DNA of 64,000 nt from Malacoraja senta (Eukaryota), in contig CM075979.1 of the NCBI GenBank assembly GCA_038087875.1, forward strand, positions 7,812,001-7,876,000. The letters are read 5' to 3'. Below are positions 15,960-59,578 of the stretch, piece by piece. The translations under genes and the position numbers were made by a program. The notes below the pieces were generated by a model that had not been told where the DNA came from, ran no database searches, and worked only from the letters and a program-made list of their open reading frames with translations. Each line of letters begins with the position of its first letter. Position 1 is the stretch's first letter.

Positions 15960-16100
15960 CCGAGCTGCCAACTCTCACACATTGAGCGTGAGAATCACGC
16001 ATTTCGCCCAATTCTCACGCTCTCAAGCTGATCCTAGAATTTCTCACGCTCTGTCGTGAGAAATTCTGTGATCAACGAGAATTTCAAAACTATTATAAAC
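15960..16100 (+). mobile_element. Probable left end of a non-autonomous DNA transposon (hAT-like gagctgccaact start with ctcacgc subterminal repeats)
   Basis: Terminus resembles the (C/T)AGGGTTGCCA class of TIR; repeated tctcacgc/gtgaga motifs; no matching right TIR found. Confidence 0.4.
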
Positions 16101-16231
16101 TGCATGGGCCGTGGGTGTTGGAGAGCTGAGGGAGGGATGGAAGCAGAAGCAGCGGCGAGGACAGATGCGGACGGGGAGCCGGTGCTGGCGTGTGTATGCC
16201 GGGCTGGCGAGTGTTTGCTGCAGCTCCGGCC

Positions 16232-16378
16232 ATGGAGCAGCCTCAGTGCAAGAGTCCCGAGGCGTCGGAAGCGTTGCGCCGCTGCCCTGAGAGTCTCTGC
16301 GCTGAATTCACCCTGGTGACCGGCATGGACCAGGCTGCGTCTTGGTACATCCTGGAGGACAACCAGTGGCTGCTGGAA
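16232..16378 (+). pseudogene. Orphan first coding exon resembling the TDP2 N-terminal UBA-like domain
   Basis: GCCATGG Kozak start; MEQPQ...SLCAEFTLVTGMDQAASWYILEDNQWLLE followed directly by GTAAGT. Recalled human TDP2 segment: LCVEFASVASCDAAVAQCFLAENDWEME. No downstream exons seen. Confidence 0.6.
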
Positions 16379-16494
16379 GTAAGTACCAAGCACTGGGTAG
16401 AAGCGGTGGAAGACAGTGGCCTTCAAATGGGGGTGGTTGGAGAAAGCATCCTGCTTGCCTGCTAGATTTTCACTTACTGTAACTGCAGGAAAAA

Positions 16495-16830
16495 ATTTCC
16501 CGATGTTGGGGGAGTTCAGAACCAGCGGTCACAGTTTAAAAATTAGGGGTAGGCCATTTAGGACTGAGATGAGGACAAACTTTCTTCACCCAGAGAGTTG
16601 TGAAATTGTGGAATTCTCTGCCACAGAAAGCAGAGCAGGCCAATTCACTGGATGTTTTCAAGAGAGAGTTACATTTAGTTCTTGGGGCTAGCGAAATCAA
16701 GGGATATGGGGAAAAAACAGGAAAGAGGTACTGATTTTAGATGAACAGCCTTGATCATATTGAATGACAGTGCTAGCTCGAAGGGCAGAACGGCCTATTC
16801 CTGCACCTTTTTTCTATGTTTCTATGTTTG
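16495..16830 (+). mobile_element. CR1/HER1 LINE 3' tail
   Basis: FPMLGEFRTSGHSLKIRGRPFRTEMR and tail cctgcacc...(ttctatgt)n. Confidence 0.85.
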
Positions 16831-17394
16831 AGTACATGGCAAAAAACACTCGACCACTTGATTTTGAAGCATTCATGCATGGTGGAGGTATAATGTAGTT
16901 ATAGAGTGATACAGTGTGAAAACAGGCCCTTCGGCCCAACTTCCCCACACCTGCCAACATGTCCCAGCTACGCTACCTGCTTTTGGTCCATATCCCTCCA
17001 AACCTGTCCTAACCATGTATCAGTCTAACTGTTTCTTAAATGTTGGGATAGTCCCTGCCTCAACTACCTCCTCTCAACTACTTCCATACACCCACCACCC
17101 TTTGTGTGGAAAAAGTTACCCCTTAAAAAGTTACCTCTTAAAAATACTTTTAAAAAAAACATTGAAATCATACTTCTACAATGCACTAAAACATAATTTT
17201 AATACATCAAATTTCAAAAGGTCCCACACCCTCCCCCCACTTGGTCGCTGCACTCCCTCACTGGGTACCCCCAAGGCCAGTGATCAGTGATCACTCAGCT
17301 CCCCCCACTTTCAAAAAAGCTCTGCGGCCTCTGGTTCAGACAGAGAGCACTGCTGGATGTGAGCGGGGAACCGAGGCCAGTTGTCCGTGATGTA

Positions 17395-18926
17395 CCCTGA
17401 TGGTCTGCATCCCAGGGTACTAAAGGAAGTGGTTTTAGAAATCGTGGATGCATTGGTGATAATTTTACAATGTTCTATAGACTCAGGATCAGTTCCTGTG
17501 GATTGGAGGGTAGCTAATGTTATCCCGCTTTTTAAGAAAGGCGGGAGAGAGAAAATTGGGAATTATAGACCAGTTAGCCTGACATTGGTGGTAGGGAAGA
17601 TGCTGGAGTCAATTATAAAAGATGAGATAGCTGAACATTTGGATAGCAGTAACAGGATCGGTCCGAGTCAGCATGGATTTACGAAGGGGAAATCACGCTT
17701 GACTAATCTTGTGGAATTTTTTGAAGATGTAACTAGGAATATGGACAAGGGAGAGCCAGTGGATGTAGTGTACCTGGACTTTCAGAACGCATTTGATAAG
17801 GTCCCACATAGGAGATTAGTGGGCAAAATTAGGGCACATGGTATTGGGGGTAGAGTGCTGACATGGATAGAGAAGTGGTTATCAGACAGGAAACAAAGAG
17901 TAGGGATTAATGGGTCCCTTTCAGAACGGCAGGCAGTGAGTAGTGGGGAACCGCAAGGCTCGGTGCAGGGACCACAGCTATTTACAATGTACATCAATGA
18001 TTTGGATGAAGGGATTCAAAGAAACATTAGCAAATTTGCAGATGACACAAAGCTGGGTGGCAGTGTGAACTGTGAGGAGGATGCTATGAGAATGCAGGGT
18101 GACCTGGACAGGTTGTGGGAGTGGGCAGATGCATGGCAGATGAAGTTTAATGCGGATGAATGTGAGGTTATCCACTTTGGTAGCAAAAACAGGAAGGCAG
18201 AATACTATCTAAATGGCGTCAAGTTGGGAAAAGGGGAAGTACAACGGGATCTGGGGATCCTTGTACATCAGTCTATGAAAGTAAGCATGCAGGTGCAGCA
18301 GGCAGTGAAGAAAGCGAATGGCATGTTGGCCTTTATAACAAGAGGAATCTAATATAGGAGCAAAGTGGTCCTTCTGCAGTTGTACAGAGCCCTAGTGAGA
18401 CCACACCTGGAGTATTGTGTGCAGTTTTGGTCATTCTTGCTATTGAGAGAGTGCAGCATAGGTTTACAAGGTTAATTCCTGGGATGGCAGGACTGTCATA
18501 TGCCGAGAGAATGGAGCAGCTGGGCTTGTACACTCTGGAGTTTAGAAGGATGAGAGGGGATCTCATTGAAAAGATTGTTAAGGGTTTGGACACGCTAGAG
18601 GCAGGAAACATGTTCCCGATGTTGGGGGAGTCCAGAACCAGGGGCCACAGTTTAAGAATAAGGAGTAAGCCATTTAGAACGGAGACGAGGAAACACTTTT
18701 TCTCACAGAGAGTGATGAGTCTGTGGAATTCTCTGCCTCGGTGGAGGCAGGTTCTCTGGATGCTTTCAAGAGAGAGCTAGATAGGGCTCTTAAAAATAGC
18801 GGAGTCAGGGGATATGGGGAGAAGGCAGGAACGGGGTACTGATTGGGGATGATCAGCCATGATCACATTGAAGGGCTCGAAGGGCCGAATGGCCTACTCC
18901 TGCACCTATTGTCTATTGTCTATTGA
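17395..18926 (+). mobile_element. CR1/HER1 LINE, 5'-truncated, RT domain open over 323 aa
   Basis: PDGLHPRVLKE...NYRPVSLT...SQHGF...YLDFQ.AFDKVPH...KFADDTKL; ends in (ctattgt)n. Confidence 0.95.
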
Positions 18927-19895
18927 TGCATGGGCAAGGACAAACTGGTCCCATGAGCACCAATATCTTTCAATCTGTCACCACAATAACCCCCTTTTCT
19001 ATTATTTCTACCAAATGATCACATATCCAACATTATATTCAATTTGATATGCCCTGCACTTATCCACTTTGCCTTTCTTCTCTTTCTGTTTCATTGTCTA
19101 CACCTCAACCCACCTTCCCAAATTATTTCCAACCTTCCCCATCTCCCTATCACCCAGTTTCTTTCCCCTCCCCTGCCACGTGTTGGTTACCCACACACTC
19201 TTACCACTCCCACCCTCCCTTAATTCCCATCTGTCTACCCGCTGCCCTATTTAGTTTAGAGATACAGAGCAGAAACAGGCCTTTCGGCCTACCGAGTCCA
19301 CGCCGACCAACACTAAACTACACTAAACCACACACAAGCACTATCCTACACACTAATTTACATCTTTACCGAAGCCAAGTATCCTACAAACCTGTACGGC
19401 TTTGGAGTGTGAGAGGAAACCCTGGAGAAAACCCACATGCAGTCACTGGGAGAACATACAAACTCCGTACAGACAGCATCCATAGTCAGGATCGAACCCG
19501 GATCTCTGATCAGGGTGTAAAAGCCCTGTTTCACGGTGCGAGCTGACCCACGAGGTACCCCGAGTGAAAGACTCGTGGAAGTGTACGAGATTCCAAGTGT
19601 ATGATCAAGAGTTTAACCGAGTTCCCACGGGTATGACTACGTTTGCCGTTTACTTGTCATTTCTGCGATGTTCCAAGTTCGTCTCCCGAGTTACCAAGTT
19701 CCTCTCCCGAGTTACTCTTGAGCCAACCGTGAATGAAGTCTGTTTTAATAAGCAACAGTGTTAAAGAAGACATCTCCATCCTGCGGCTTTGAGTTAAGAT
19801 AGAATTCAGCGCGGCCGCATCTATTGATATGATCTACAAAGGGAAAATGCGCACCGTCCAGTGCCAGAGCAGTTATACTTATGATTTGTTTGAAA

Positions 19896-20278
19896 CAATA
19901 GCAGTGAGGAAGAAGCATTCTCACGTCTACACCAGTGATAAACCGTACAACTGTAAAGTAAGAGGCTGCGACAAGTCATACACTCACCCTAGTTCTCTTC
20001 GCAAACACATGAAAGTTCACTGCAAATCTCCTCCCCCTCCCGCTAGCTCAGGCTATGAACTTTCAAACACATCCCTGGGGATGGTGTCCCCAGCCGCAGA
20101 GACAGTCAGGGGCCGCACTGCCAGCGTGTCCTCACATGTAACCAACCTCAACGAATGGTACGTCTGTGAGGGAAGCGGGGCGGCCAACAGCCTGCATGCA
20201 CCTTCCAACAATGGCACCTCGTCCGACACCGAGGATGAGGAAGTTTACACGAACTCTGATCCCAGAACTATGCTCTGA
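19896..20278 (+). pseudogene. ZIC5: ZIC5-like last-exon fragment (end of zinc finger 4, finger 5, C-terminus)
   Basis: [44 protein letters not shown]...[10 protein letters not shown]...[19 protein letters not shown] matches the recalled ZIC5 C-terminus (ZIC4 not fully excluded). NSSD codons lie upstream out of frame; last His of ZF4 is Tyr. Confidence 0.8.
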
Positions 20279-21617
20279 TATAGGTGCGTTGGAGAAGTGT
20301 GCAAGTGGGCAAGAGTCAACGCAGGGTTAGTGGCAATGGAGCCCATCAACTAAAGGCAGCTAGGATGTCCAATGATGACCATCTTACACCAGCTAGATTT
20401 AAACCTCGTAGGAAAGGAATTTAAGGGCTAAGTATCGGTTCTTAGGCAACTTTTTGGCCTCCGTGTCAGTCAGAATTATTGTGTGTACTTCGAGGTAAAA
20501 GAGAATCGCTATCTCATTTACTTTCAGACTATAAATATTGATTTTCTGAAATCAGACGTGACTTAAATAGATAAAACATATCATCAGACCCATTTCGGAC
20601 TGGCAATAGAATCTTCGACCCACGAGAAACACCTCGCTTCTTGGAAGTGATACATACATTGCCGATCTTTGCTTACTCCCAAATTAGAGACCATTGTCCG
20701 AAAGAAGGGAAATTCTACAATTCTGTGAAATCTTCATGACTATAATCCCTGGAGGGAATCAAAACGGCCATAGCCTTGTGTTCAGTGAAATGACCCAGTG
20801 CCACCACGTTCGGTAACGAAGCACAAGCGACATTCTATTTACACATACCTAACATACAAAGCTGAATTCGGACTTTCCTGCTATATGTGAAAAGAGTCTT
20901 CTATCAGTAAGAGTGAAACTCACAAGTACTCTATTTGACCCTGAAATCAGAATCGACAATATCTCAACCCTTAAATCCAAGAGCTCTAGGATTCTTTTGT
21001 GTGATCTTCTATCCGTCATGGTAAAGTAAAAAATCTCATATTTTACAGATAATTATTCAGGCCTTCAGACAAGCAAACTAAAGAGCACTAATATATCCTT
21101 AGAGGCCAGAAGATGCAAAAATGACAGGCCTGTCCCTGTAGGATTTGTACATAATTGTCGTTAGCTATGTTAAGATTTTGTCCAGAAATGCTCTTTTATT
21201 TGTAAACTATAATTTATTTGCTGATGTGTCATATCTTTCTGCGATGGTACAGACACACCAAAGAATTATATTATTACGTTTGGTGCTGTATTGTGGTGTT
21301 TATGAACTGTGGTTTCGTCAGACAATTTAATTTTTGATTAATTGAATGAAATGTAAAATGTGAAAAGTAAAATATGTGATTGTTTATTTCTACTCAGTGG
21401 TGGTTAATCGTTGTAACTACAGTATTGGTCCATGTTATGATCATGATGCTTGTTGCAGTCATCTTGTATTTCCCTTGCATTGACAAACGCCACCCAGAAC
21501 TCCTGATTGAAAAAAAATGCAACAAAGACAGTTCCTTTATTGAAATGAATGGTCCACGTGTACTTTGTGTTTCAGTGAAAGAGGTTAAACCGTGTGACAG
21601 TGTATTTTCCAATTGTG

Positions 21618-21623
21618 AATAAA
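21618..21623 (+). terminator. Putative poly(A) signal of the captured ZIC 3' UTR
   Basis: AATAAA after ~1.3 kb of AU-rich, TGTA-rich UTR-like sequence, followed by a GT/T-rich stretch and no poly(A). Confidence 0.55.
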
Positions 21624-24600
21624 GAGATATTGTTCTTCCTCTGTTTTAATAATCGTATTCCATATTAAATGTCTAAATCCTAACAAAATGTCAAAACGTG
21701 ATTTTTTTTGCGGGGTCTGCGGATGTAGCAACACTCAACTCGATCTTCGATAGTGAAGAATCGAGTAATCTCAGCCAATGATGGAAAGCCAGATGATTTC
21801 AGGCCCCGGGCGTGAGTTTTATGTTTATATGTTTATTGTTGCACAAGGACCTCTGCCTCTGTGCAAATATTTACCTGTTCAATGGCAGAATGGGAGACAT
21901 GTAAGAGGCAGGTCGAAGAAGCTACCTGGATACAATTGGCAGCCGGATGTAAAACAGTTCACAATATTATCTGTAATCGTTATTTGAAAACAACGTAAAA
22001 AAGGCAAGCAAAAAAGTCACATTTGTTTTCGGAAATCAAAATGTTCTGGAGTCCAAAATTGCAGGGAAACTGGGAGATATATTGGTTGAGGTGAAATCAA
22101 GATTTAACGAAGATTCCCGTTTTACAAATCCGGTCGCAGTACACGAATATACCGAACTGTTTTAATATCTCCACAGTTCAGTTGTAACCTCGCCCCACAA
22201 ATGTTATACTTGATGATTTACATGTTATTGCACGGTCATCCCCAGCAGCGCACAAAACCAAAATGCGGCATCAAAAACAATGCGGCAAAATACATCGTTT
22301 CCGCAATTCAATTTCTGATTGTCACAGTTCTAGATATGATGAAGTTTTTCAAAATTCATCATCTGTCTCAGAGGAACTGAATTTGTCTCTAGGATCATAA
22401 TGAATATTTAAATTATTATCGTCGACTTTATGTACGTTATGGATGGTATATCCCATGTACCGCTGATCGCGCTTCAGGGTCACCTTGTGAAGGTGGATAT
22501 CATACCACCTAAAAGCGCTGGAGTTACACAAAGACAGCAGAAATTTGGAAATGTCATCCCATCACACATTCCTTCTCTCCAGAGATGCTGCCTGCCCGCT
22601 GAGTTAAAGAGTTCCCACGGTAGACTCACGAGTCACTAAGGTAAACGCACGGGCCACTACGTTCTTACAACATGTTTAAATGTTTCAAATTTTAACCTCA
22701 AGAGTACATTTTACTCGTGGAAAAGTTTAAACATGTTTGAATTTTTCCAAGAGTTAACAAGTGTCACAGGTACCTGCCATTAGCGCCAAGAGTCGCTAAG
22801 TTACGTTCACGAGTTCCGACGTTCCCGCTACGTTAATCGTACATGATTACCACAAGTTAAATTTGTTTTAAGCTCAGGGTACCTCGTGGGTCAGCTCGCA
22901 CCGTGAGACGGGTTTAAGGTAGCAACTCTTACTTCTGCTCCACCGTGCCGCCACTCTTCGCTTTCCCTTCTTATCAGCTTCCATAATCTGCAGTAGGAAA
23001 TTTTATTCTCTACCCATCACCTCCCATCCTCTATCAGGTTGAACTAAATTACTTGCACATGACCTGGTGTTAGAGCAGTTACTTTTTCAAAAATTAAGGA
23101 ATCATTTTTTAAACATTTCACTTTAATTGCGAGGACCGTGGAAGGGAAGCTGTGTTTTCATGAAGTATATATAATTTTCATTAAGACAGAGCTGTCATGC
23201 ATGGATCGTGTGCCATGTGGCGGAAGCAGTCGCACCAGCCAGATGAGTCCAGTGACCTCGTTTTATGCTGTAACAATATAAGTATCACAAAATAATCTGG
23301 GCCCTATAATTTTCCACAGCCATGACTTGTATTGATCTGTTGGCAGGAGAGAACCTATTTTGTATTTCCTACTTTGATTGCTTGCGCCCTTGGTGTGCTG
23401 CATCTGTCTGAGGAAGTGCCAGACTTTAACAAAGAGATTAGAAAATTATCCATTTCAATCAAAATTCACAGACATGCAGAAGATGGTAAATCGATGGGCC
23501 TAAGTAGTATCTGCATGAATCTGTGTGACGTTGGTCCAACAATCATGATCTTATTGGACTTTAAAAAAAATATTTTACCAGTATCTTCCAATAAGCACAT
23601 TAATTTGGAATTTAACAAAATAGCATATAAAGTAACATAAAAGGATTTCCTAACTTATTGTTAATAAATGTCTGTGCATGATTCCTTTATTATTAACAGT
23701 TGGAATTTTTGAAGAAATATTTGTACTTTGCTGCTTGGCTCCAAGTAATCTGCGGGATCTGGTGTGAGACTCTTTGAATAATGGCATTTAAAAAAATGGA
23801 TGTAAACATCAAATTAAGAAATGTAATATGATGAAACATACATAGATGATTCAACGAGTGACCCTCCTGCCAACTGGTGAAGAATGACATTTTATTGAAA
23901 CTTGGCAAAATATAAAATTTTAAGAATACAGGTTTATAGGAATATTTTAACCTTTTTTTTGACCCTTTAAATGTCATTGTATTACTGTAAGCATTGGAAA
24001 TATGACATTTAGATGTAGGGTAGAATTTGACCTTTTAAAGATGCTTTATAGATAATGAACAATGTGAACTCAATTTTTATCTGGAAAACCAGGTTCTTGC
24101 TTTCATTTTAACTGAACTACATGGGCTAAGATACATGTAATCAGGCGATTTGTGATTGTGAAGAGAATTCAACTGCTGTTTATATTTCTAAATTCATGCA
24201 AGATTTAACATTGTGGTGTTGAAATGGGCAAATATAATCCAGTTGTAATGGAGCTACCATCCTGCGCTGTGGCACGCACGATACAGTAATTGTGAATCAA
24301 CAGGCTCCAGCAGGAGTTCAGCTGCAGCTTCATGGCTTCAGCATTATTCAGTGCGGGTGGTTTATGCTTGAGAGATTTACCACAGATACATTTTTATTCA
24401 TGGTGAACATGGGCTGAATGAAATGTTATTGTCATGTATTTTTGGAAAGGTCTAAAAGGTTGTTCTCCTTGGATAAGGGGAAGTCTATGAATTTAATGAA
24501 TATACTCAAAATTACAAAGGGATTTGCTGAGCAAATAAAATTTCATCTGGAGGGAAGGTTGATCACCAGAGAAGAGAGAATTAACTATAATGACTAAAGG

Positions 24601-26844: not shown

Positions 26845-27062
26845 GACACAAGGAATTGCAGACGCTGGAATTTTGAGCAAAAATCAAAGTGTTGGAGGAA
26901 CTTAGGGGGGCCAGGCTGCATCCGTGGAGGGGAATGGATAAATGATGTTTCGGTTTGGGATCCTAGCTAAAAAAGGGTCCCAGCTTGAAACATCATCTGT
27001 CCATTTCCCACCACAAATGCTGCCTGATCCCCTAGGTTCCTGCAGCAGTTTGTTTTTTGCTC
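26845..27062. repeat. Degenerate palindromic copy of the hammerhead-motif repeat
   Basis: gcaaaaaatcaaagtgttggaggaact...gatgtttcggtttgggatcc and gggtcccagcttgaaacatc...gttcctgcagcagtttgttttttgctc form inverted arms. Confidence 0.65.
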
Positions 27063-27391: not shown

Positions 27392-29008
27392 CAGTGGCTT
27401 GCAAAAGTATTCATACCCCTTGAACTTTTCCACATTTTGTCACGTTACAACCACAAACGTAAATGTATTTTATTGGGATTTTATGTGATAGACCAACACA
27501 AAGTGGCGCATAATTGTGAAGTGGAAGGAAAATGATACATGGTTTTCAAATTTTTTTACAAATTCAAAACTGAAAAGTGTCGCGTGCAAAAGTATTCAGC
27601 CCCCTTTACTCTGATACCCCTAAATAAAATCCAGTGCAACCAATTGCCTTCAGAAGTCACCTAATTAGTAAATAGAGTCCACTTGTGTGTAATCTAATCT
27701 CAGTATAAATACAGCTGTTCTGTGAAGGCCTCAGAGGTTTGTTAGAGAACATTAGTGAACAAACAGCATCATGAAGCCCAAGGAACACACCAGACAGGTC
27801 AGGGATAAAGTTGTGGAGAAGTTTAAAGCAGGGTTAGGTTATAAACAAATATCCCAAGCTTTGAACATCTCACGGAGCACTGTTCAATCCATCATCCGAA
27901 AATGGAAAGAGTATGGCACAACTGCAAATCTACCAAGACATGGCCGTCCACCTAAACTGACAGGCCGGGCAAGGAGAGCATTGATCAGTGAAGCAGCCAA
28001 GAGGCCCATGGTAACTCTGGAGGAGCTGCAAAGATCCACAGCTCAGGTGGGAGAATCTGTCCACAGGACAACTATTAGTCGTGCACTCCACAAATCGGGC
28101 CTTTATGGAAGAGTGGCAAGAAGAAAGCCATTGTTGAAAAAAAGCCATAAGAAGTCCCGTTTGCAGTTTGCCACAAGCCATGTGGGGGACACAGAAAACA
28201 TGTGGAGGAAGGTGCTCTGGTCAGATGAGACCAAAATTGAAGTTTTTGGCCTAAATGCAAAACGCTATGTGTGGCGGAAACCTAACACTGCACATCACCC
28301 TGAACACACCATCCCCACTGTGAAACATGGTGGTGGAAGCATCATGCTGTGGGGATGCTTTTCTTCAGCAGGGACAGGGAAGCTGGTCAGAGTTGATGGG
28401 AAGATGGATGGAGCCAAATACAGGGCAATCTTGGAAGAAAACCTGTTAGAGTCTGCAAAAGACTTGAGACTGGGGCGGAGGTTCACCTTCCAGCAGGACA
28501 ACGACCCTAAACATACAGCCAGAGCTACAATGGAATGATTTAGATCAAAGCATATTCATGTGTAAGAATGGCCCAGTCAAAGTCCAGACCTAAACCCAAT
28601 TGAGAATCTCTGGCAAGACTTGAAAATTGCTGTTCACAGACGCTCTCCATCCAATCTGACTGAGCTTGAGCTATTTTGCAAGGAAGAATGGGCAAAAATG
28701 TCAGTCTCCAGATGTGCAAAGCTGGTAGAGACATACCCCAAAAGACTTGCAGCTGTAATTGCAGCGAAAGGTGGTTCTACAAAGTATTGACTCAGGGGGG
28801 CTGAATACTTTTGCACGCGACACTATTCAGTTTTTAATTTGTAAAAAAATTTGAAAACCATGTATCATTTTCCTTCCACTTCACAATTATGCACCACTTT
28901 GTGTTGGTCTATCACATAAAATCCTGATAAAATACATTTACGTTTGTGGTTGTAACGTGACAAAATGTGGAAAAGTTCAAGGGGTATGAATACTTTTGCA
29001 AGCCACTG
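27392..29008 (+). mobile_element. Full-length Tc1 DNA transposon (IR/DR type, Passport/Eagle-like)
   Basis: TA flanks at 27390-91 and 29009-10; ~210-bp near-perfect TIRs starting cagtggcttgcaaaagtattca, with an internal repeat of gcaaaagtattca. Confidence 0.97.
27771..28790 (+). pseudogene. Tc1 DD34E transposase, 339 codons, two in-frame stops
   Basis: Paired-like N-terminus, [27 protein letters not shown] (34 residues between D and E); TGA at 28536-38, TAA at 28563-65, no frameshift. Confidence 0.95.
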
Positions 29009-39556: not shown

Positions 39557-39904
<348 letters not shown>

Positions 39905-44200: not shown

Positions 44201-44967
44201 AGCTAAGTGATATCACAGCCACGGATCAGATCAAAGATCTGCAGTGCTCACATATCTAATAAGAAGGGTCTCGACCCAAAACGTCAACCATTCCTTCTCT
44301 CCAGAGATGCTGCCTGTCCCGCTGAGTTACTCCAGCATTTTGTGTCTATCTTCGGTGTAAACCAACATCTGCAGTTCCTTCCTTCAATTTGTATTTGTAA
44401 CTTAATTACTTTAATTTGTAATAGTGGTTGACAATTAGACATCTAACAAGAAACAAAGGCTCCAAGCACATCCCCATTCTCGTCGGTGATAGGGCCCTAC
44501 TTCTGTGTTCAAGGTAAGGCCAAAGCATTCAGCCCGAAATGCTGAACAGATAATCCATCTCAGCTTCCTCCTGAATTCCAAGAAACCAGTCTCCAGCTGT
44601 TCAATTAATTCCGTATTTTATTACAAAGAAGCTGTCAGCACTGGATACAGTAAAGTCTACGGACCTTGACAGCTACCCAACTGTTGTACTGAAGCTGTAT
44701 GCAGCAGAATGAGCTGCACTTCGAGTCAAGCTGTTTCAGTGCAGTTACAGTACTAGCATCTGTCCAACAATGTAGAAAATTGTCCAGTTACAGGTAGTTC
44801 TGCTATAATGCACGTTTCCATAACACAAATCGGATATAACACTAGTGATGAATTAGGAAGCACAATCAGTAATAGGGAACCTCTTAAAAATGAATTTGGA
44901 ATTGACAAACAGAAAAAAAACCTGTCTTAGAATTTAAATAGTATAGGGTGGGGTAGTGAGCTGGTGT

Positions 44968-44998
<31 letters not shown>

Positions 44999-46150
44999 TG
45001 CTGTTTCTATGTGACCTGCTGTAATCAGACTGTTTCTTAAGAACACAGCTTAAGAACACTTCAACCATGGTTGGCATGAAATTGACAAGCAGCGCTTCCA
45101 ATGATATTCTGTGAGGAAATAACATACATGCACAACATACATGCACACGCATTCCTTCCACTACCAGTGCATCGGCTGCAATGTGCACCAACTACAAAAT
45201 GTAGTTACTCGCCCAAAGGTAGATGCAAAATACTGGAGTAACTCAGCGGGACAGGCAGCATCTCTGGAGATAAGGAATGGGTGACAGTTGGAGAGCCAGA
45301 GTTTGGGTTAGTAAATTAAGCTATACAAAAAATAAAGCAATACTAAGCCTGAAGGGCAACTGGGAGAGAGTGGAATTTATACCGAAGGATCAGTCTGCCA
45401 GTACTATCATATTGGATGAATATCAAATCTCCAACTACTGGAAGAGGCTAACTCTGTTTCCATGGAGACATGTTTGACAGCGACAGAAGGGGAAAAAAAC
45501 CTCTATCCAATCTGCTGCTCTAACTAATCCGAAATTCTCATTAGATAAGCATGGGAACTGGCCAGTTCCATGAAACATGACCAAATTGTCATTTTAAAAT
45601 GTGGTCCATTCACAAGGGTGAATGTAAATCTGTCGTTTGTAGAACCGGCAGATTAGAAAGTAACAGTTTCCTGTCTTTTGTGTCTTACTTGATAATGAGT
45701 TTTTATTGAGTGGAAGGTGTGGATGCGCATTACAGATCTTGCACAGGCAAGGATCAATTCACAAAAATATCCGAGCGACGTATAACTCTGGCCAAGTAAA
45801 TCTTAATAACACACTCAATCGATCCTAATAACAGCGAAAATGTGAAATAAGTTTTACTTCATTTTCCAGAACCATGCCCATATATTAGATTGTAGATTAT
45901 CCCAAAATAATGAATCAATTCAGTTGTAACGGTTACTGAACCAACCTTCCATGTCATAATCAATTTACTTTTCCAATTGTATAATTAGCGCTCAAGAAGC
46001 ATCTATGCGTATAATTAAATTTCATGTTTGTGCCATGCATCTATAGAGCACAAAAACGTGCAAGGAGGTGGAAGATATTTGAAAGAGCATGAAGATTATG
46101 GATGAGGTCAGTTTATTTGAAAAAAATCTGTTCAAACTTTCTCACTCTTA

Positions 46151-49525: not shown

Positions 49526-49639
49526 ATTTCTTTTCTCCAGAGTTGATTCCTGACCAGCTGAGTTACTCCAACATTTTGTTTCTACCTTTTACGTAATATC
49601 TGCAATTGTCTACTACTCCCCAGCCAACCCTTGAATGTC

Positions 49640-50115
49640 AAGTCAAGTTGAGTCACGTTTATTGTCATATGCACAAATATGGTAAGCTGCAGGTACAATG
49701 AAAACTTTGCTTGCAGCAGCAACATAGGCACAGAGACTCAAACACACAAAATATAAATCAGACAAGACAGTGAAAAGAAAAATACTGTAAAAAATCAGGA
49801 AATGAGTACAGACCATAATTAGAAAACAAGTCCATGATAATGCAAGGGGTGATTTCATTTATTTTGCTGAGGTAGGATTGGAGTTGTGCAGGTTGGTTCA
49901 AGACCCTGATGGCTATGTGAAGGTAACTGTTCCTGAACCCAGTGGTGTGGGAGTTCAGGCTTCTGTTCCTTCTGCCAAACGGCAGCAGTGGGAAGAAGGC
50001 ATGAGCCAAATGGTGGTATTCTTGATATTAGATGCTACCTTATTGAGGCAGCACCTCACGTGGATGCTTCTGATGGTGCGAAGTTCTAAGTTTGCGGTGG
50101 AATGGGCTGAGTGTA
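49640..50115 (-). mobile_element. Rex1/Babar LINE 3' end (old)
   Basis: LLPFGRRNRSLNSHTTGFRNSY...AIRVLN; reverse gacaataaa and cttga tail. Confidence 0.75.
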
Positions 50116-53100
50116 AGTAACATCATGTGTCCAGTCCTGCCCATAAATGGGCTGAAGAAATCTTTCAGAATCACTTAAGCCATGACCAAGCTGGCTGTCA
50201 AAAATAAGTAGTTCAGAATGTCTCTGAAATTGTACATTAAAAAGCAATTTAGATTTAAACATTTGCTTTGAAAATAATACATAACAGAAAGGTTTTTTCA
50301 AAAACAAATACTGTAATACCTAGATAATTAAGAACATTTATCTAAAGTTATAAGAGAGATGCTGTTTGTATATAGCTGTAATCTGGAGTGGGGATTCCCA
50401 TGTGGGAGAACAGCCCAGAAAAGATTGGCAAAAAGCAGTAATAATTCCACATTCATGCAAGGATCCCAAACCTGGTGGCTATTATTCAGGAAATACTTAT
50501 AGTTCCACATACTGTTTCCCTGCAAACTCTGGCATAATATCTGCTTTTGTACTTCCACTCAAACCTCCCTTCCCCCTTATAGTTGTCAGATATTCTATTT
50601 AAAACTGTCAATCCAATGACTGCAACAAATCAAATGGACCTAATTATTCTGATCAAATCATCTGAAAATATTGGTTATGTTTATGTGGGAGTGGCCTTTC
50701 CTAATCTTCCTCAATTCACTACTTTTCCACCAAAAGTTACAGCATTTCCAAAATAAATATTTAAGCTGTTAGCTCCAGCATTAAAATTGGCCAGAAGTGG
50801 GGCTGTAATTGAACGGAAATTTAAATGGAAACAAAGATGGCTTCAGACTGGATTTTGAGTGAAAATAACACGTGTTTCTGCAACGCAAATTGGATATATT
50901 GTGATTGATGAATCGGGCCAAAATTGTGTTTATTCCACAGACCAGATTGGTTATAACGCGATACCAATCGGGAACTAGCGAACCACTTAAAAGTTACTTT
51001 TAAAATTGACGAGCAGGGAAAAAAACTGTCTTGAAGAAAAATGTCTAGGGAAAAAAAAACTGCTTCCATGACACCTCCCCACAGTAATCAGACATCATTG
51101 TCTCAGCTGCTATTTTAACCAGGTGGCAACTTAAATTGACAAGCGAATTGACACTTTTGCGCAATATTACTCCTTGAAAGTAACATTAGCCTTTGGTATA
51201 TTTTTAGGCAGTAATAATCCTGCCTAAAGAAGTAATTTAAAAATCCTGCGGAAAAAATAACTTTGTTATGGTGATTCTGAAACTCTCCAACTCCAAACCC
51301 CCTTGTTAGGATTGCTTTTGCAATGTGATTTTCTATAAGGCCTGGTTTCTTAGCAGCACAGCCATTGTGTTTTAGCAGAATTACATATATTGACATTATT
51401 CATGCTACTTGACAAATTCTTTCCCCAGGGGAAACATGTCCTGAGTGCCAATTATATGTGAAAAAGTAAATTGATCATGTCATGTATGTTTGATTCAGAA
51501 ACTGTTAAACTGAATTGATTCATTGATTCGGCAATATGCATTGCCGGGAATGTTATACAATATCATATACAAAATGATCCAGTTAAACACTGTAGTAATT
51601 AGTAAGTAGAAGGTACTTACTGACTTTTGATGGCATGGGAAAAGGTGGCTTTGCAAAAGATCAGCTGATTGCATTGTGCAGGAGGGAACCAACAGATGCT
51701 GGTTTACACTGAAGATAGACACAAAATGCTGGAGTAACTCAGTGGGCCAAGCAGCATCTCAGGAGAAAAGAAATAGGTGACGTTTTGAGTCGAGACCCTT
51801 CTTCAGATAGATTACAGGCATCAGACCAGGTCACAGGGAGAACGTACAAACTCCACACAGACATCACTCGCAGTCAGAACCGAACCTGGGGTCTCTAGTT
51901 GTGAGGCAGCCATTCGACCAGCTGCACACTGCGCCGTCCTTAGGTTGAGTTGAGAAAGAGACCATGGAGTAACAAGAACAGACATGGGTGATGGTCGAAT
52001 GTTCAGAAATTATTGAGGAAGGGAGGTGAGATATATCGCCCTGTAGTCACTGGTGTGGAAAAGAATGAGAGATGATCTGATTGAAACATCCAAAATTCTG
52101 ATCGGCATTCGGAGGCTATGAGGGTATTCCCAGTAGCTGGAGCATCTAAGTGCAATACAACTCGGACTTTGCACAGCAATTGGGGTCGTTGTCAACGATC
52201 ACAGAGAAGTGAGGCGAGGAGAAATCACTTTGTGCAGAGAGAGCAGTAAATCTTTGGAATTCCCTACCTCACTTGGCTTTCTTTGCTCCATAACTAAATC
52301 TATTGAAGTCTGTGATTGCTGGTTTTCTGTTCACTCGGGGAATCTAATTTAATGTGAACTGGGCAGACAAAATGGCCTTGAGGCACAGAATCGGCCATGA
52401 TCTTACCAAACAGTTGAGCAAGCTCGACAAGCAGTGCGGTCCTGCTACTGCTCCTACTTCTTACAATCACGTCATAGGAGCTCAAAGAAGGACAGAGACA
52501 TTAAAACAGCATTATCTCAGTGAGCACGAACTTGTCAGATCTGTTCCTCTATAATGTGCTATATTGCTGAGTGTAATGCTTTATACAAACAAAAACTGCT
52601 TTTTTTATAGCTTTGTTCATGATGCTTCTAGTATTTAACTGCTGAAGAAGCACCTTCTGAAGGATTTTTCTGTGTTGCGGAAGTAAATCTTGCAACTAAT
52701 TCAGTGCAAAGCAAATTCTCAGGAAACAGCTAACGAGTTAAATGATACGAAACTGTTTGTACAGCTTGGTTCAACTGCATATTTATTACATGCTGAATGG
52801 AATAACGTTCTTGTTTTTTTCTGTGTATTTCCTGGCACTATGAACCTATGAACAGTAGCAATGATGATGCTTTGACTGTGAATGCAGTACCCTGGAAAAT
52901 CCTGGCTAACTTTGCTGTCCATTGATAACACCTCTTAGCTCACATGTACTCCATATGCTCTTGTGTTGCGAACTGGATTCAATCAGCTAACTGGATCTGA
53001 AAGGAATTTCCAGCTGAATTCTTCCCCTTAAATGACTCAGTTTCTCTCCTCTGGGGTTTTGTCTCTCCCTGTAGATTTCATTTGCTTTGCCCATGCTGAA

Positions 53101-53727
53101 GATTGATAGACAACACCTCTAGTTATTTCCCTTCAAGATACAGCATGGAAACAGACCCTTCGTCACACCAATTCCACACCCGACCATCGATCACCCGTTC
53201 ACACCAATTCCATGTTATCCCGCTCCCTGCACATTAGGGTCAATTTACAGAGAGCCAATTAACCTACAGACCCCCACGTCTTTGGGATGTGGATGGAAAA
53301 CGGAGCAACCGGAGGTAACCCACGCGGTCACAGGGAGAATGTTTGCTTGTGTAGGGAGTGAACGGGAAGTAGAACTAGTGTGAACGAGTCATTGATGGTC
53401 GACGTGGATGCTGTGGGCCAAACGACTTGTTTACATGCTGTATCTTTCAATCAGTCAATCAGGTTTTAAGGAATAAACTGCACAGGTGCATTTCATAGAT
53501 CTGAACATCAGCTAACAACGATGACGGAACAGGTGGTACAAGTTGTGGGACTGTCTGCGAGGTGTAAGGCGAAGGGGGAGAAAGATTGAATAGGAACCTA
53601 AAGGGTAACTTTTTTACATATGGAGCGTGTATGGAACGAGCTCCTGGAGGAGGTAGTTGAGGCGGGTACTATTGCAACGTTTAAGAGATGTTTACACAGG
53701 TACATGGCTAGGGTAGGTTTAGAGGGT

Positions 53728-54053
53728 AGTTTAGTTTTAGTTTAGCCCAGTTTAGAGATACAGCACGGAAACAGGCCCGTCAGCCTTCAGTGCCCGCACC
53801 GACCAGCGATCCCCGCACATTAACACTATCCTACACACACTAGGGATAATCTACACTTATACCAAGCCAATTAACCCACATACCTGTCTTTGGAGTGTGG
53901 GAGGAAACCGAAGATCTCGGAGAAAACCCACGTGGTCACGGGGAGAACATACAAACTCCGTACAGACAGGACCCGTAGTCGGAATCGAACCGGGTCTCTG
54001 ATGGTGCAAGCGCTGTAAGGCAGCAACTCTATCGCTGCATCACTGTGCCACCC
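53728..54053 (-). mobile_element. HE1/V-SINE, near full length
   Basis: Reverse of the head/core/tail seen in + copies. Confidence 0.9.
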
Positions 54054-54071
54054 AAAGTCTGAAGGTTAAGT

Positions 54072-54099
54072 CTGAAGAAGGGTCTTGACCCGAAACGTC
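54072..54099 (+). ncRNA. Candidate minimal type I hammerhead ribozyme core within a repeat (54070-54166)
   Basis: CTGAAGA-A-GGGTC-TT-GACCC-GAAA-CG-TC: both conserved boxes, stem II and a GUC site; stems I and III minimal. Confidence 0.5.
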
Positions 54100-54309
54100 A
54101 CCCATGCCTTCTATCCAGAGTTGCTGCCTGTCACGCTGAGTTACTCCAGCATTCTGTGTCTATCTTAGGTTTAGAGGGATATGGGCCAAATGCAGACAGG
54201 TAAGACTAGTGTTGATGGGACATGTTGGTCGGTGTGAGCAAGTTGGGCCGATGGGCCTGTTTCCACACTGTATGACTACAAGGTCTATCATTCTGCATGT
54301 TGCTGCAAT

Positions 54310-54820
54310 GCTGTGGGTTGATGCACTCCACCCCTGAATTCAGAAGGTTACAGGTTCCAGTACCATTGGAGCACAAAAACAAATGTCAACTCCACAGTAC
54401 AATTCCTTCAGAGTTAAATCCTTATGGTTGAGGTGTTATTTTAGGGTTTTCCTTCTCTCTCAGGTGGATGAAAAATAAAAATCTCACAGTGCTATTTTAA
54501 TGTAGCCAAAACCTGCTCCTGGTATTTTAAGAAACATTAAGATATAACCATAAAATTAAACAGCAGTTTAAAGAATGTTGTACACTGCTCTGTCGTACAT
54601 TTCCGTTATATATCTTGCATTGCCCAGAACTAGTTGTACTCGCTTCTTCAAAGGGATCTTTTATATTCATTAGACCAAACCTTAATGCTTCATTGAAAAG
54701 ATGATACCTCTAAAAGTACTGCAATGCAGAATCAACCTGAAGATTGCTTCTGAGGTTTTTCACACTGGGACTTGAATCGTCTAAATTCTGAGGTGAAAGT
54801 GTCACCCATTGAGCTGCAGA
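54310..54820. mobile_element. Ancient Deu-domain SINE remnants (AmnSINE/SacSINE-like), one per strand
   Basis: ctctctcaggtggatgaaaa...cacagtgctatttt on +; gggatcttttat...ttaatgcttcattgaaaagatgatacctc on -. Confidence 0.5.
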
Positions 54821-54849
54821 TAGGTACATAATGACTACACCATAAAGTT

Positions 54850-55435
54850 AACATCAAGACTAACATCCCCTACAACTCTCACCAACTTCTACAGATGCAC
54901 CATGGAAAGCATTTTGTCAGGATGCGTCACAGTTCCAACCAAGACCGCAAGAAATTGAGCGAATTATGTACGCAGCCCAGACCATCACACAAATTAACCT
55001 CCCTTATATTGACTCCATTTATACCTCACGCTGCCTCGGCAAGGCCAGCAGCATAATCAAAGACGAGTCGCTGCCACTCCCCCCTTCTCCCCTCTCCCCT
55101 CAGGCAGAAGGTATAGAAGTGTGAAAACGCACACCTCCAGATTCAGGGACAGTTTCTTCCCAGCTGTTATCATGCAACTGAATCATCCTACCACAACCAG
55201 AGAGCAGAGCTGAACTACTATCTACCTTGGTGACCCTCGGACTCTCCTTGATCGGACTTTGCTGGCTTTACCTTGTACTAAACATTATTCCCTTATCATA
55301 TATCTACCTATACATTGTAAATGGCTCAATTGTAATCATGTATTGTCTTTCTGCTGACTGGTTAGCACGAAACAAAAGCTTTTCACTGCACCTTGTTTCG
55401 CTTGTACAAGTGACAATAAACTAAACTGCACTGAA
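54850..55435 (+). mobile_element. Rex1/Babar-type LINE 3' end
   Basis: accaacttctacagatgcaccat..gaaagc, ggcagaaggtatagaag..cagattcagggacagtttcttccc; gacaataaactaaact tail. Confidence 0.8.
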
Positions 55436-55989
55436 CTGGTGGTTACCAGATAATGAGACAAAATGAAGCCACACTGTTGGGAGTACTGTACGTTTGCAAA
55501 GCAAATGTGTTGTGTTCCTTGGCACGTTCTGTATCTCAGCCAAAAGTGACAGAGTAACCAGAGTCTGGCGTGAATGACATCCCATTTGGAGGTGATATCA
55601 TACTGTGTCAGAGACAGCAAGAAATATAATTGTGCTGCACTGTCATACTGTTTTACTTCATAGCCTTGCGCAGAGTTGATTTAAAATTGTTTTGAGAAAT
55701 CTGCAGTTCGTACAAATGCTATAAGAAATATTCCATGCCTGGCAGCCAAGAGCAGATGTTCTTGTCTGCATGTTCCCAGACCCCACCTTGCCAGAAGTCA
55801 TTCTTGCAGCCAAGCAGAAAAAAAACAAAGTCATGCCAGCTGAATATCCATATGGTAGTTAACGGTCTGAACGGCAGCTTCAGCAAACTGCAGCTTAGAG
55901 ATACTAGACTTATTTGTTAATTTATTCTTTAACGGGTGGTACTAGAAATGACAAAGGTTCCATGCCAGTCGCTGGGTACATACGTGATC

Positions 55990-56365
55990 TCAGTTCAGTT
56001 TAGTTTAGTTTATTGTCACGTCTACAAGTGAAACAAGGTACAGTGAAAAGCTTTTGGTGCGTGCTAACCAGCCAGCAGAAAGACAAATACATGATTACAA
56101 TCGTGCCGTTCGCAGTGTACAGATACGTGATAAGGGAATAACGGTTAGTTCAAGGTAAAGCCGGTAAAATCCGATCAAAAATAGTCCGAGGTCCCCGATG
56201 AGGTAGATAGTAATTCAGGATTGCTTTCTGGTTACGGAAGGATGGTTCAGTTGCCTGATGGAAAGAAATTGTCCCTGAATCTGGAGGTGTGCACTTTCAC
56301 ATGTCTATACCTTTTGCCAGATGGGAGAGGGGAGAAGAGGAGTGGCCAGGGTGCGACTTGTCCTT
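55990..56365 (-). mobile_element. Same LINE 3' end, inverted relative to 54850-55435
   Basis: gtttagtttattgtcac...gtgaaaagcttt...tgctaaccag is the reverse complement of ~55330-55425. Confidence 0.8.
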
Positions 56366-57142
56366 GAATATTCTATTCTTTCTATTCCTTCTATCTATCT
56401 ATACATAACTAAAGCTCTGATCTTGTGCTCTTCCGGTTTGCGCAAAAACGGTACGCGATAGCACTACGACTTTTCGCCAGGGTACTCGGCGTTCTGTGCT
56501 GTGAGTGCAACAAGTTTCGTTCCGATCGGTGGTATATTGTAAAAGTTATCGAGGTTTAAATATCTTTAAAACCGCACTGCGCAGATTCCTTCAGTCAGCG
56601 CCACGCAGTTTGTTCTCTTCACCTGTCAGCCAATGCCACGACCGGGATGGCGACGCCCCTTCCTGCCCCATCGGCGGCCGCCTGTCCCGCCTCACTCACA
56701 AACTCCTCTCTCCCCTCCTCACAGTAACTTGTCTATCGTCTCCCCCACCAACGGCGGTGGCCGCGAGGGGGGAGGTTAAATTGAAGGCCCAGTGGAGGCC
56801 CTGGTCCCGTCTCTCTCTCCCTCATCACTCACCCCTCTCCCCCCCCCCGCCCTCTGCGGCAATGGCAGGTAGGCGGGTGGGCAGGGCGGGGACGGGCCGA
56901 GCGGCAGCAGAGGCGGGGGGGGGTGGGCTGGGTGCCGATGGGCCGAGTGGAAACAGCAGGCGGTCGGACAGGACAGGCCGAGCGGCGGATGAGCCGGAGT
57001 GGCAGAGGGAGGGGGGGGGGGGGGGGGGGGAGTCGGGTTGCAGGGTGGCTGAGCAGTTTGCGTGGAGTTTGAGTAACTGATACACACACACGATGCAAAC
57101 TGAGTCCAATCGTCAAGTCAACTGGATCTAAACCACAACTAA

Positions 57143-57472
57143 TGGCCCTGTCCCACGGTACGAGTTCATTCCAAGAGCTCTCCCGAGTTTGCCCTGATTC
57201 GAACCCGGAGACTTACGGTAATGGCCGCTCGTTGGTACTCGGGGCTCTCGTGGACATTTTTCAACATGTTGAAAAATCTTCACGAGTCTTCCCGAGCTTA
57301 CCTGCCGTTAGCGAGTCTTCCCGAGTACCTTCCGTTAGCATTACGAGCCGCTAAGAGACGTCCCCGAGCTCCGACGTACCCGCTACGTTCATTCTCCGTG
57401 CTTACCACGAGTTTGATTTTTTTTAAACTCGGTAGAGCTCTTGGAATGAACTCGTACCGTGGGACAGGGCCA
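57143..57472. mobile_element. PIF/Harbinger MITE (330 bp) nested in the Helitron
   Basis: Perfect ~39-bp TIR tggccctgtcccacggtacgagttcattccaagagctct; TAA TSD at 57140-42 and 57473-75. Confidence 0.95.
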
Positions 57473-57519
57473 TAACAATGAATGACCTGCGGAGGAAGGA
57501 ACTGCAGATGCTGCTTTTT

Positions 57520-57920
57520 AAGGATGGAGGGATGGAGGGAGGGGAGGAGGAGAGGGGGAAGATCCTGGGGAGGTGAGGAGGGAGAGTGGGGGGATTGAGG
57601 AAGAGGAAGGGGTAGGAAGGGAGAGGGGGAAAGTGGTGGAGGTGAGGAGAGGGAGTGGGGGAGCAGGGGGAATAGAGGGAGAGGAGGGGGGAGTAGGAAG
57701 TGGGTAATAGAGGGAGAGAGCAGTGAGGGAGGTCATGAGGGATAGTGGGCGGGGTAGGGGGCGGTGAGGAGTAGGGGATAGAGGAATAAGAGGGGGTAGG
57801 GAGGGGAGAGGGAGGGAGGGAGTGACTGAGGGTAGGGGAAAGGAGAGGGAGGGCGAGGTGAGGGAGGGATTGGGGAGGGGAGGAGAGGGGAAAGAAGAGG
57901 GAGGGTGAAGAGAGGGAGGG
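57520..57920. repeat. G/A-rich polypurine tract, G-quadruplex-prone
   Basis: Dense G3-G6 runs. Confidence 0.85.
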
Positions 57921-59578
57921 GCTGCTGGAGGATGAGGGGAAATGAGCCGTGCCTGCGCAGTTGGGGGCTATGCATGAGTGGTGGAATATTGCATTGGGGG
58001 AACGGGTGAGTGGTGGAATATTGCGTCGGGGAACGGGTTGCGTTGGGGGACCAGGACTCCCGTGTGACAGGGGCCCAACGGGTCCCCACTTAGTCTAGTT
58101 ATCTCTATTTTTCCATCTAGAATTATTCAAATCTTTCATTCATCGACCAAACCTGGCAATTACAATAGTGACAGAACTCCACAAGCAGTGTGCTGAATGC
58201 AAGGGGAAAAAAATCGATGTACCAATCAAGTTATGAACCTCTCAATAATAATAAAACTCAACTTCCTTTTATGAAGCATTAGTTCTGGTCCATTAATGAC
58301 GACATGGAAAATAAAATAGTTTGCATTTAAAATCACGTCAAATGAATTACCATTACAAAAGGGCATTTGGTCAGTGTAAGGAAATATTGCATTCTCAACT
58401 CATAAGTACTTTGAAGCTCTCAGCAGACCTTGCACCACAAGCGTAATATGTTTTCATTACACCTACTGAGCAGGAGATGATTTCTTCCACTCACTGGATC
58501 ACAGCTGCCTGTTGATTCCACGCAGCTTGTTTTCAACACTTTTATTATAACCTTTTGCTTTTTCAATATAAATGGTGCAATTTAATGCTCATTTGTATTG
58601 TGCTCTCATTTAAGTCTTAAATTTAACCATTGGCGCACTAATCGTGATATCTAATGATCCATGGTCTCAATGTCTGTACCATTCAGTAAGTCTGCACCGA
58701 CTTTCATCTCGTTTTATTCACTTCCATGTTATTCTGCACATTTGCTCCTTATTGTGTTTCGTATTATTTATAAAGCCTGGAGAAAAAAAGCAGCTTTTTA
58801 AAGTCACAAATTTCACTGAGTTCGGTGATTTATTCGGTGATTCAGTCACAAGGCACTGCAGATGACTAAGGGTGCCGTTAAACTGAAATGGGTGCAAGAA
58901 AAGGATTACACAGATGCTCGAGCAAAGAAACAAATTGCTGGAGGAACTCAGCGGGTCAGGCAGCATTAGTGGGGGGAATGGACAGACAACGGCTTACCTT
59001 GGAACCCTTCCGGGCTCTTTACAAGGATGCTACTGGGTCAGGAAGGTTTACGTTATAAGGAGAGGCTGGATAGACTAGGACTTTTTTCCCCTGAACCGTA
59101 GAAGGCTGAGGAGTGACCTGGGGTGGGCAGCACGGTGGCACAGCGGTAGACTGAGTCAGGAGAAGGGTCTCAACCCGAAACGTCACCCATTCCTTCTATC
59201 CAGAGATGCTGCCTGTCCCGCTGAGTTACTCCAGCTTTTTGAGTCTATCTCAGGTTTGTAGGTTAATGTCCTTCAGTAAAATTGTAAATAGCCCCTGTAG
59301 GATTGTGTGTGGGATAGTGCGAGCGCGTGGGGTGGTCGCAGGTCAGTGTTGACTCAGTGGGCCAAAGGGCCTGTTTCCATGCTGTTTCTCTAAAGTCTAA
59401 AGACCTTATAGAGGTTTATAAGGCCATGAGGGGAATGGATAAGGTGAATGCCCATAATCCTTTCACAAGTATAGGGCTAGGTTTAAGGTGAGAGGGGAAA
59501 GTTTTATAAGGGTCTTGGGGGAAACCTTTTCACACAGAAGATGGTACAGAAATGGAACGAGCTGCCAGAGGAAGCTGT

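Follow-up and report, generated by a model that had tools for sequence, protein, structure and literature searches.

New exons, promoters and chimeric transcripts can, as is recognised, arise when DNA transposons capture gene fragments, and examples of such capture have been described in plants and in bats and other animals. Pack-MULEs favour GC-rich DNA. The animal cases on record are chiefly bat Helitrons and rare Pack-TIRs (TIR, terminal inverted repeat) of the hAT and Tc/Mariner superfamilies, most of them present as single copies. We analysed a 64-kb stretch of the genome of the skate Malacoraja senta (contig CM075979.1; hereafter the window, with coordinates counted from its first nucleotide), in which three elements with gene-like interiors, here called A, B and C, lie within 42 kb.

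A bias toward gene 5' ends has already been documented for bat Helitrons, which preferentially take up promoters as well as 5' untranslated regions (UTRs) and first exons, and the families carrying such sequences amplify most (PMC4224331). In a survey of animal Pack-TIRs (Tan et al. 2021, PMC8277862), these amount to about 2 per 10,000 TIR elements, with only 4 multicopy cases among 370. Its main text assigns 87% of the cases to hAT and Tc/Mariner and names neither Harbinger nor cartilaginous fish; the survey gives transposition-independent gap filling as the usual route to single-copy animal Pack-TIRs (PMC8277862). Our own literature search for Helitrons and gene capture, the coverage of which was incomplete, yielded no account of cartilaginous fish in which transposons capture genes.

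Element A was confirmed as a Harbinger-type element with a foreign interior, which includes a piece of ZIC5. Considered jointly, the 42 kb are best explained as a region dense in repeats around TMEM263 that contains three DNA transposons, all of them inactive, non-autonomous and unrelated to one another, each with a foreign interior, an explanation in which we have good confidence. None of the three is a working gene, and the copies present here are dead. A first-pass annotation had placed up to three cargo-bearing classes of DNA transposon in these 42 kb; all three elements exist, but only the ZIC5 cargo has an identified parent.

A Harbinger-type element with a ZIC5 interior

Element A spans 3.4 kb (19521-22914) and is bounded by 40-nt TIRs that are 93% complementary (Table 1). 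We rebuilt its empty site from the two flanks, joined through a single TAA, and the product aligned without a break over the junction with six other copies of a short interspersed nuclear element (SINE) in the window. All 3.4 kb thus entered a SINE as a single insertion, accompanied by a 3-bp TAA duplication. The terminus of A is shared with a miniature inverted-repeat transposable element (MITE) that is nested in element C, and within the window the terminal 19-mer is confined to the two ends of A and the two of the MITE (0.02 expected by chance). Both elements are flanked by the TWA-type 3-bp duplication of PIF/Harbinger elements, and their TIRs are common to the two, as in a PIF/Harbinger family. 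Since a TAA duplication in two independent elements is a Harbinger signature, A and the MITE are of Harbinger type. No Harbinger-type transposase was noticed among the long open reading frames (ORFs) of the window, of which a minority was compared with Pfam.

The interior ORF of A, at 19829-20278, encodes a C2H2 finger (zf-C2H2, E 2.3e-6) and the NEWYV motif. The best named of its 570 relatives are mammalian ZIC5 proteins, with 55-58% identity and 92% coverage that includes the tail after NEWYV, and the top relative (P0007, 93% amino-acid identity) is a skate-like ZIC5 exon 3 from Logan contigs. One of the contigs from which this relative comes, L004, contains a complete ZIC5 exon 3, preceded by a polypyrimidine tract and an AG. 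L004 and the window are 96.8% identical over 940 nt, from 19896 to the end of the contig at 20832, and a further 11 nt, CAATAGCAG, are common to both from 19882, beyond a 2-bp deletion. Farther upstream, a comparison of 19720-19881 with intron 2 and the start of exon 3 of ZIC5 in L004 gave a local score of 18 against a shuffle mean of 17.6. Homology thus starts at about 19882-19896, and the capture begins inside exon 3, about 16 codons in. Captured intron 2 with its splice acceptor was accordingly rejected, the similarity upstream of 19882 being at shuffle level and the apparent acceptor a coincidence. The TIRs, the TAA duplication, the SINE empty site and the match to the ZIC5 contig all bear out the first-pass reading of a Harbinger element with ZIC, but its cargo boundary has to be moved from intron 2 into exon 3.

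Toward the 3' side, the block at 21079-21285 is 70% identical (E 2e-15) and collinear to sequence downstream of ZIC5 in a distant species (L006), and the ZIC5 3' sequence in A therefore extends at least to 21285. Through L004 and L006, A has the identifiable host locus that characterizes a Pack-type TIR element. The remaining interior to 22558 likely continues the ZIC5 locus. At the right junction, the 45-nt scrap of a common repeat may be filler from the capture event; copies of this repeat recur elsewhere in the window, for example at 44289-44329, 45239-45284 and 59183-59228.

Compared with L004, the ZIC5 cargo has a 2-bp deletion near its start, a tyrosine in place of a zinc-ligand histidine, two further derived replacements and three CpG-to-TpG/CpA changes. 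It lacks exons 1-2 and the first ~16 codons of exon 3, and because exons 1-2 are absent it cannot encode a ZIC protein. A native ZIC5 gene was ruled out as the identity of A by the truncated exon and by the position of the unit inside a SINE with a TAA duplication.

At the DNA level, the middle of A probably gave way to one uninterrupted piece of ZIC5, comprising the 3' four-fifths of exon 3 and the 3' UTR. The replacement could have occurred by gap repair with a ZIC5 template, either at the present site or elsewhere with subsequent transposition. We give even odds to formation in place, by which a Harbinger MITE residing in the SINE would have lost its interior, had the gap filled from ZIC5 and never moved as a carrier of cargo. 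Gap filling is the main route for single-copy animal Pack-TIRs in the survey (PMC8277862), and A has filler DNA at its left breakpoint and the repeat scrap at its right. Moreover, none of the 570 ZIC-like ORFs was a second copy of the cargo form of A. This absence from an ORF database is little informative, however, as the window's own ZIC ORF, like its TMEM263 ORF, also had no record by exact-sequence look-up. Two observations speak against the account of A as a transposed carrier of ZIC5 DNA throughout: the lack of a second copy among these ORFs leaves movement after the capture unsupported, and L004 and L006 both end short of 21286-22558, so that this stretch is not tied to ZIC5.

A Helitron-like element with a GC-rich core

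Element C spans 56390/56398-58098. Its ends read TCTATAC...CTAG, between an A (56397/56398) and a T (58098/58099) and with no duplication, which corresponds to the TC and CTRR ends of Helitrons. At the left edge, the A is followed by TCTATACATAAC at the end of a (TCTA)n run, and the edge is ambiguous by 4-8 nt. Extra TCTA units precede the head, three in the window and two in contig L005 (about 776-790). The 3' hairpin has a 7-bp GGGGACC/GGTCCCC stem with a long loop and lies 11 nt before the end.

Contigs of four runs were aligned with 55900-58400. The outer flanks had a single-copy depth of about 30-50, whereas 55984 to about 58100 was multicopy. In the unique flank at 58043-58400, run X1 matched with zero differences and runs of other organisms at ~95%, which indicates a skate-like fish with sequenced relatives, several in number, as the origin of the window. 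The summed contig depth of the core was 2e4-1.8e5 at 56404-56907, from many separate contigs of 85-90% identity, and 2e4-7.5e4 at 56623-57139, against about 35 on the unique flanks. In the tail, the depth was about 9e5 (57916-58083) and fell to about 35 past 58100. One X16 contig started at 56397, and another matched 57930-58099 only. The edges of C thus coincide with the boundaries of other copies, which start at 56390-56397 and end at 58099. L005 shares the head at 81% identity up to 56622 and then enters the unrelated tail of a long interspersed nuclear element (LINE).

In contigs of other copies of C, 57139 is followed directly by 57473, with 333 nt missing and an overlap of 3 nt, which is the empty site of the MITE; joints to 57493, where the contigs overlap by about 21 nt in a common repeat, were not used. 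Within the core, a 46-bp tandem duplication lies at 56875-56963 and a 24-nt G run at 57007-57030, and 56908-56991 is much rarer in the runs than its neighbours (depth about 500-1600).

The core matched no Pfam family. No host gene could be assigned to it; the sole relative from a word search was P0127, and its contig has no more than the head in common with C. No clear RNA for C was found in the runs. A unique host promoter was ruled out as the identity of the core, which is multicopy in runs of three species. Of the earlier reading of a Helitron with a CpG island, the TC ends, hairpin and CTAG between A and T, the agreement with copy boundaries and the GC content of 0.66 stand, but a host gene for the island could not be assigned.

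We infer that C is one Helitron, a reading that we consider reasonably probable, and its carriage of foreign-looking DNA is plausible. C would then be a copy of a multicopy Helitron-like element with a patchwork interior and a GC-rich core, which was later hit by the Harbinger MITE. Two points tell against a single element: no contig linking head, core and tail in another copy appeared among the contigs aligned with the region, and depth varies a thousandfold along C, so that head and tail could belong to different repeats. Alternatively, C might consist of several repeat fragments that lie side by side by chance, with TC and CTAG at the outer edges as a coincidence. The span of three orders of magnitude in depth, with a tail 5-10 times more abundant than the head, agrees with such a juxtaposition, as does the position of the 5' TC within a (TCTA)n run. 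Nevertheless, we regard it as rather unlikely: both edges match the boundaries of other copies to the base, the hairpin ends 11 nt before CTAG, the flanking A and T show no duplication, and Helitron families typically have common ends and differing interiors (PMC4224331).

A dispersed family with a TDP2-like exon

Element B extends from 15960 to about 16838 and represents the left part of a dispersed family. Its exon, at 16232-16378, comprises 49 codons, from an ATG up to the splice donor GTAAGT, and encodes a UBA-like domain. We searched 1.84 billion representatives with the 49-aa exon, and a word search added P0005 and P0006. The search of the representatives recovered P0002, a 110-aa ORF that is another copy of the element; its match to B covers the exon and continues on both sides, upstream of the ATG and past the splice donor as far as the same stop. 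Three contigs from three samples (L001, L002 and L003) are 87-89% identical to the window and 86-91% identical to each other. Four copies of B have different left flanks.

With a profile of four copies of B, the best PDB match was the UBA domain of TDP2 (6q00_B, E 2.7e-4), followed by that of p47 (E 1.4). The window copy of the exon alone matched weakly (Pfam UBA-like, E about 0.1; 6q00_B, E 0.61), and copy P0005 passed the Pfam UBA_4 cut-off. From these sequence comparisons, TDP2 is the putative donor of the exon. A full-length or parental TDP2 with this exon was absent from the 1.84 billion representatives, which yielded only element copies and three unrelated repetitive proteins, and this result weighs against the assignment of the donor.

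B is a decayed, probably truncated member of its family. Gene-fragment capture, which is real for A, is very likely for B. The ancestor of the family would have taken up the GC-rich 5' end of a host gene together with its first coding exon (TDP2-like UBA), splice donor and the start of intron 1.

Capture bias and clustering

We applied CpG-island criteria of GC >=0.5, an observed/expected ratio (o/e) >=0.6 and a length >=200 bp. The cargo of A has a CpG o/e of 0.61-0.77 and a GC content of 0.37-0.53, compared with a mean CpG o/e of 0.47 for the window, and only its 383-bp coding part (GC 0.53, o/e 0.61) qualifies as an island; the other 2.3 kb have a GC content of 0.37-0.43. The elevated CpG o/e of A is consistent with a fairly recent copy from a hypomethylated locus. 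Its cargo is a 3' exon with 3' UTR, neither a promoter nor, outside the coding part, a CpG island. In B, 16101-16378 qualifies, and the core of C does so narrowly (GC 0.66, o/e 0.60). The expectation of CpG-rich cargo in all three elements is thus borne out for B and the core of C, whereas A is only above background. With three cases and one identified parent, a bias toward CpG-rich loci cannot be established.

Capture or carriage by several DNA-transposon classes in the M. senta genome is real. The corresponding first-pass claim is upheld in that three superfamilies have gene-like foreign interiors, but the window does not carry the inference that was drawn from it for the whole lineage. B and C are amplified families, and their presence here is therefore a matter of copy number following a single old capture in each family rather than of frequent capture. 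The closeness of A, B and C looks coincidental and is explained by the abundance of B and C and the tendency of the region to accumulate repeats, with no local process behind it. Among the more than a thousand windows of this genome that were scanned, a single one with all three elements is unremarkable.

It could be argued that the capture of CpG-rich open-chromatin fragments is unusually frequent in this lineage, involving at least three superfamilies, and that the clustering is a symptom of genome-wide exon and promoter shuffling. One window contains three superfamilies with foreign interiors, B and the core of C resemble CpG islands, and animal Pack-TIRs are normally as rare and as seldom multicopy as cited above (PMC8277862). 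We nonetheless consider this proposal unlikely, as a single donor has been identified, the ZIC5 cargo is a 3' exon and UTR with a GC content of 0.37-0.53, the amplified copies of B and C may trace to very few captures, and all cargoes here are decayed. Equally doubtful is the stronger form, in which capture in skates would be unusually productive over at least three superfamilies, with a ZIC5 piece moved by Harbinger, a TDP2 5' end at very many sites, and donors lying preferentially in hypomethylated CpG-rich chromatin.

Class and spread of element B

The left end of B at 15960-15964 is a real family boundary defined by three independent contigs with different upstream flanks: the matches of L001 and L002 begin at 15962-15964, and what lies upstream in these two contigs resembles neither the window nor the other contig. 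The terminus reads CAGAG in L001, CAGGG in L002 and CCGAG in the window; it continues with GCTGCCAAC and then with TCTCACG/CGTGAGA repeats in both orientations. We infer a hAT class for B, which fits this terminus. L001 and L003 remain ~89% identical to the window through the LINE tail (16485 on), to 16759 and 16711, respectively, whereas other LINE tails are 77-84% identical; the LINE tail was therefore in the B unit before the family multiplied. It may already have been present in intron 1 of the donor and been taken up with the cargo, with multiplication following.

Several results weigh against B as a TIR-type element. No inverted copy of the terminus that could mark a right end was found in the window (19-mer with <=3 mismatches, 16-mers with <=4), and the window contains no credible 8-bp duplication with a matching inverted end; inspection of 18860-19320 by eye revealed no right end either. 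In addition, reverse transcription would be a suitable means of spread for a unit with a common LINE tail. Hence, of the earlier description of a hAT-like end with a TDP2-like exon, the family boundary and the TDP2 UBA profile hold, but a right end and target-site duplication were not found in the window. The alternative that B is a retroposon, in which a transcript from a TDP2-like promoter ran into the intron 1 LINE tail and was copied by the LINE machinery, would account for the shared tail, for the lack of an inverted right end and duplication in the window and for a unit finishing at the LINE (TTCTATGT)n tail near 16838, with the shared "end" as a transcription start, but it is quite improbable given the CAGRG terminus as in hAT ends, the TCTCACG repeats, both inverted and direct, of the kind usually found where a transposase binds, and the same starting base in all three copies that reach the terminus.

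Setting and other features of the window

The window has a GC content of 42% and is crowded with repeats, including LINE, SINE, DIRS and Tc1 remnants; the LINE sequences comprise reverse-transcriptase fragments and tails, and one SINE is present in many copies. The terminal coding exon of TMEM263 is the sole clear host exon. It forms the portion after the splice acceptor at 39620 of an intact ORF (39572-39904, plus strand) and is conserved; no upstream TMEM263 exons were located in the window. Upstream of this exon, on its strand, are elements A and B, probably within an intron or the 5' region of TMEM263, and element C lies downstream.

The DIRS-like element on the minus strand carries tyrosine-recombinase domains, and an internal stretch of it (4501-5500) is CpG-rich, with an o/e of 1.1-1.2. 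An AT-rich LINE remnant at 11260-12768 on the plus strand (GC 26-29%) has a zf-RVT domain in the ORF at 12202-12768, and its composition differs from that of the other LINE fragments of the window. The other CpG-rich patches (45.3-46.8, 53.3-54.2, 24.9-25.6 and 30.4-31.1 kb) contained no further cargo-bearing TIR elements. An Rfam scan of the whole window at gathering scores gave no match.

Table 1. Coordinates and characteristics of the features identified in the window
Feature	Position	Strand	Characteristics
DIRS-like retroelement	2378-7282	-	ORFs with Phage_integrase and SAM-like domains; reverse transcriptase- and RNase-H-like ORFs
Element B, terminus	15960-16100	+	CCGAG; TCTCACG/CGTGAGA subterminal repeats; palindrome I1; homology to L001, L002 and L003
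Element B, GC-rich 5' UTR-like stretch and exon	16101-16378	+	GC 0.62-0.67; CpG o/e 0.64-0.81
Element B, intron-like stretch and LINE 3' tail	16379-16838	+	Identity to L001 and L003 carried through LINE tail
Element A, left TAA target-site duplication	19518-19520	.	Sequence; rebuilt empty site
Element A, left terminal region	19521-19719	+	TIR 19525-19564; subterminal CGAGTT-type repeats; direct-repeat families D1, D2 and D5
Element A, filler between left terminal region and ZIC5 cargo	19720-19881	+	162 nt; no other copy in window
Element A, 5'-truncated ZIC5 exon 3	19882-20278	+	End of zinc finger 4, zinc finger 5, NEWYV tail, stop codon
Element A, ZIC5 3' UTR and downstream DNA	20279-21285	+	Collinear with L004 to 20832; block 21079-21285 matches L006
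Element A, remaining interior	21286-22558	+	No repeat match elsewhere in window; CpG o/e 0.77
Element A, 45-nt fragment of high-copy repeat at junction of cargo and right terminal region	22559-22606	+	14 other matches in window, 83-98%
Element A, right terminal region	22607-22914	+	TIR 22873-22912; 144 nt 74% identical to MITE end
Element A, right TAA target-site duplication	22915-22917	.	Sequence; rebuilt empty site
Tc1/mariner transposase N-terminal remnant	27771-28538	+	HTH_Tnp_Tc3_2, E 1.4e-25; Sleeping-Beauty-type helix-turn-helix, E 3.6e-18
TMEM263 terminal coding exon (UPF0444)	39621-39904	+	Pfam UPF0444, E 1.9e-42; preceded by splice acceptor
Element C, head	56390-56622	+	(TCTA)n, then TCTATACATAAC; L005 81%; X16 contig matches from 56397
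Element C, GC-rich core	56623-57139	+	GC 0.66, CpG o/e 0.60; multicopy; 46-bp duplication, poly-G run, ATGGCAG/GT motif
Nested Harbinger-type MITE	57140-57475	+	Element 57143-57472; TAA at 57140-57142 and 57473-57475; perfect terminal match at both ends
Element C, patchwork	57476-57929	+	25-nt piece of common repeat, then purine-rich low-complexity DNA
Element C, tail	57930-58098	+	32-bp duplication; 7-bp hairpin stem; terminal CTAG, then T

Significance and comparison with known systems

With a ZIC5 fragment borne by Harbinger at a clean empty site, a dispersed TIR-type family with a first exon and a Helitron-like family with cargo, gene-fragment capture would be extended to one more superfamily and to cartilaginous fish. 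Provided that the class and copy number of B hold, an exon carried by a dispersed family of TIR type would be unusual. The value of these findings lies in the bookkeeping of genome evolution and in fewer mis-annotations, such as orphan "ZIC5" or "TDP2" exons and false CpG-island promoters, rather than in the function of the locus.

The cargo of A shares the last zinc finger, the NEWYV motif and the ZIC5-type tail with vertebrate ZIC5, but it is a fragment and not a gene, with a truncated exon 3, the 2-bp deletion and the loss of a zinc-binding histidine. A and the MITE resemble PIF/Harbinger MITEs in their 3-bp TAA duplication, inverted ends of 30-40 nt and subterminal repeats. The small size of such elements is matched by the 330-bp MITE in C, whereas A carries about 2.9 kb of foreign interior.

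A and B fit the pattern of Pack-TIRs, as described in the survey (PMC8277862), and of the plant Pack-MULE and Pack-TYPE elements, in which non-autonomous TIR elements contain, in place of their own interior, host gene DNA copied at the DNA level. Breakpoints inside the element and filler at the junctions are further features in common with the Pack-TIRs of that survey (PMC8277862). B differs from them in being a dispersed family, whereas 4 of 370 Pack-TIRs are reported there as multicopy (PMC8277862).

Bat Helitrons (2014, PMC4224331) are multicopy, have interiors of patchwork structure and favour the 5' ends of genes, and C likewise has Helitron-type ends and a GC-rich core. In contrast to the bat elements, the vehicle of B looks TIR-type, the core of C is without an assignable parent gene, and the host is a skate. 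The NUBPL capture by a bat Helitron (PMC4224331) nevertheless has the same cargo layout as B, namely a gene 5' end, exon 1, the splice donor and the start of intron 1.

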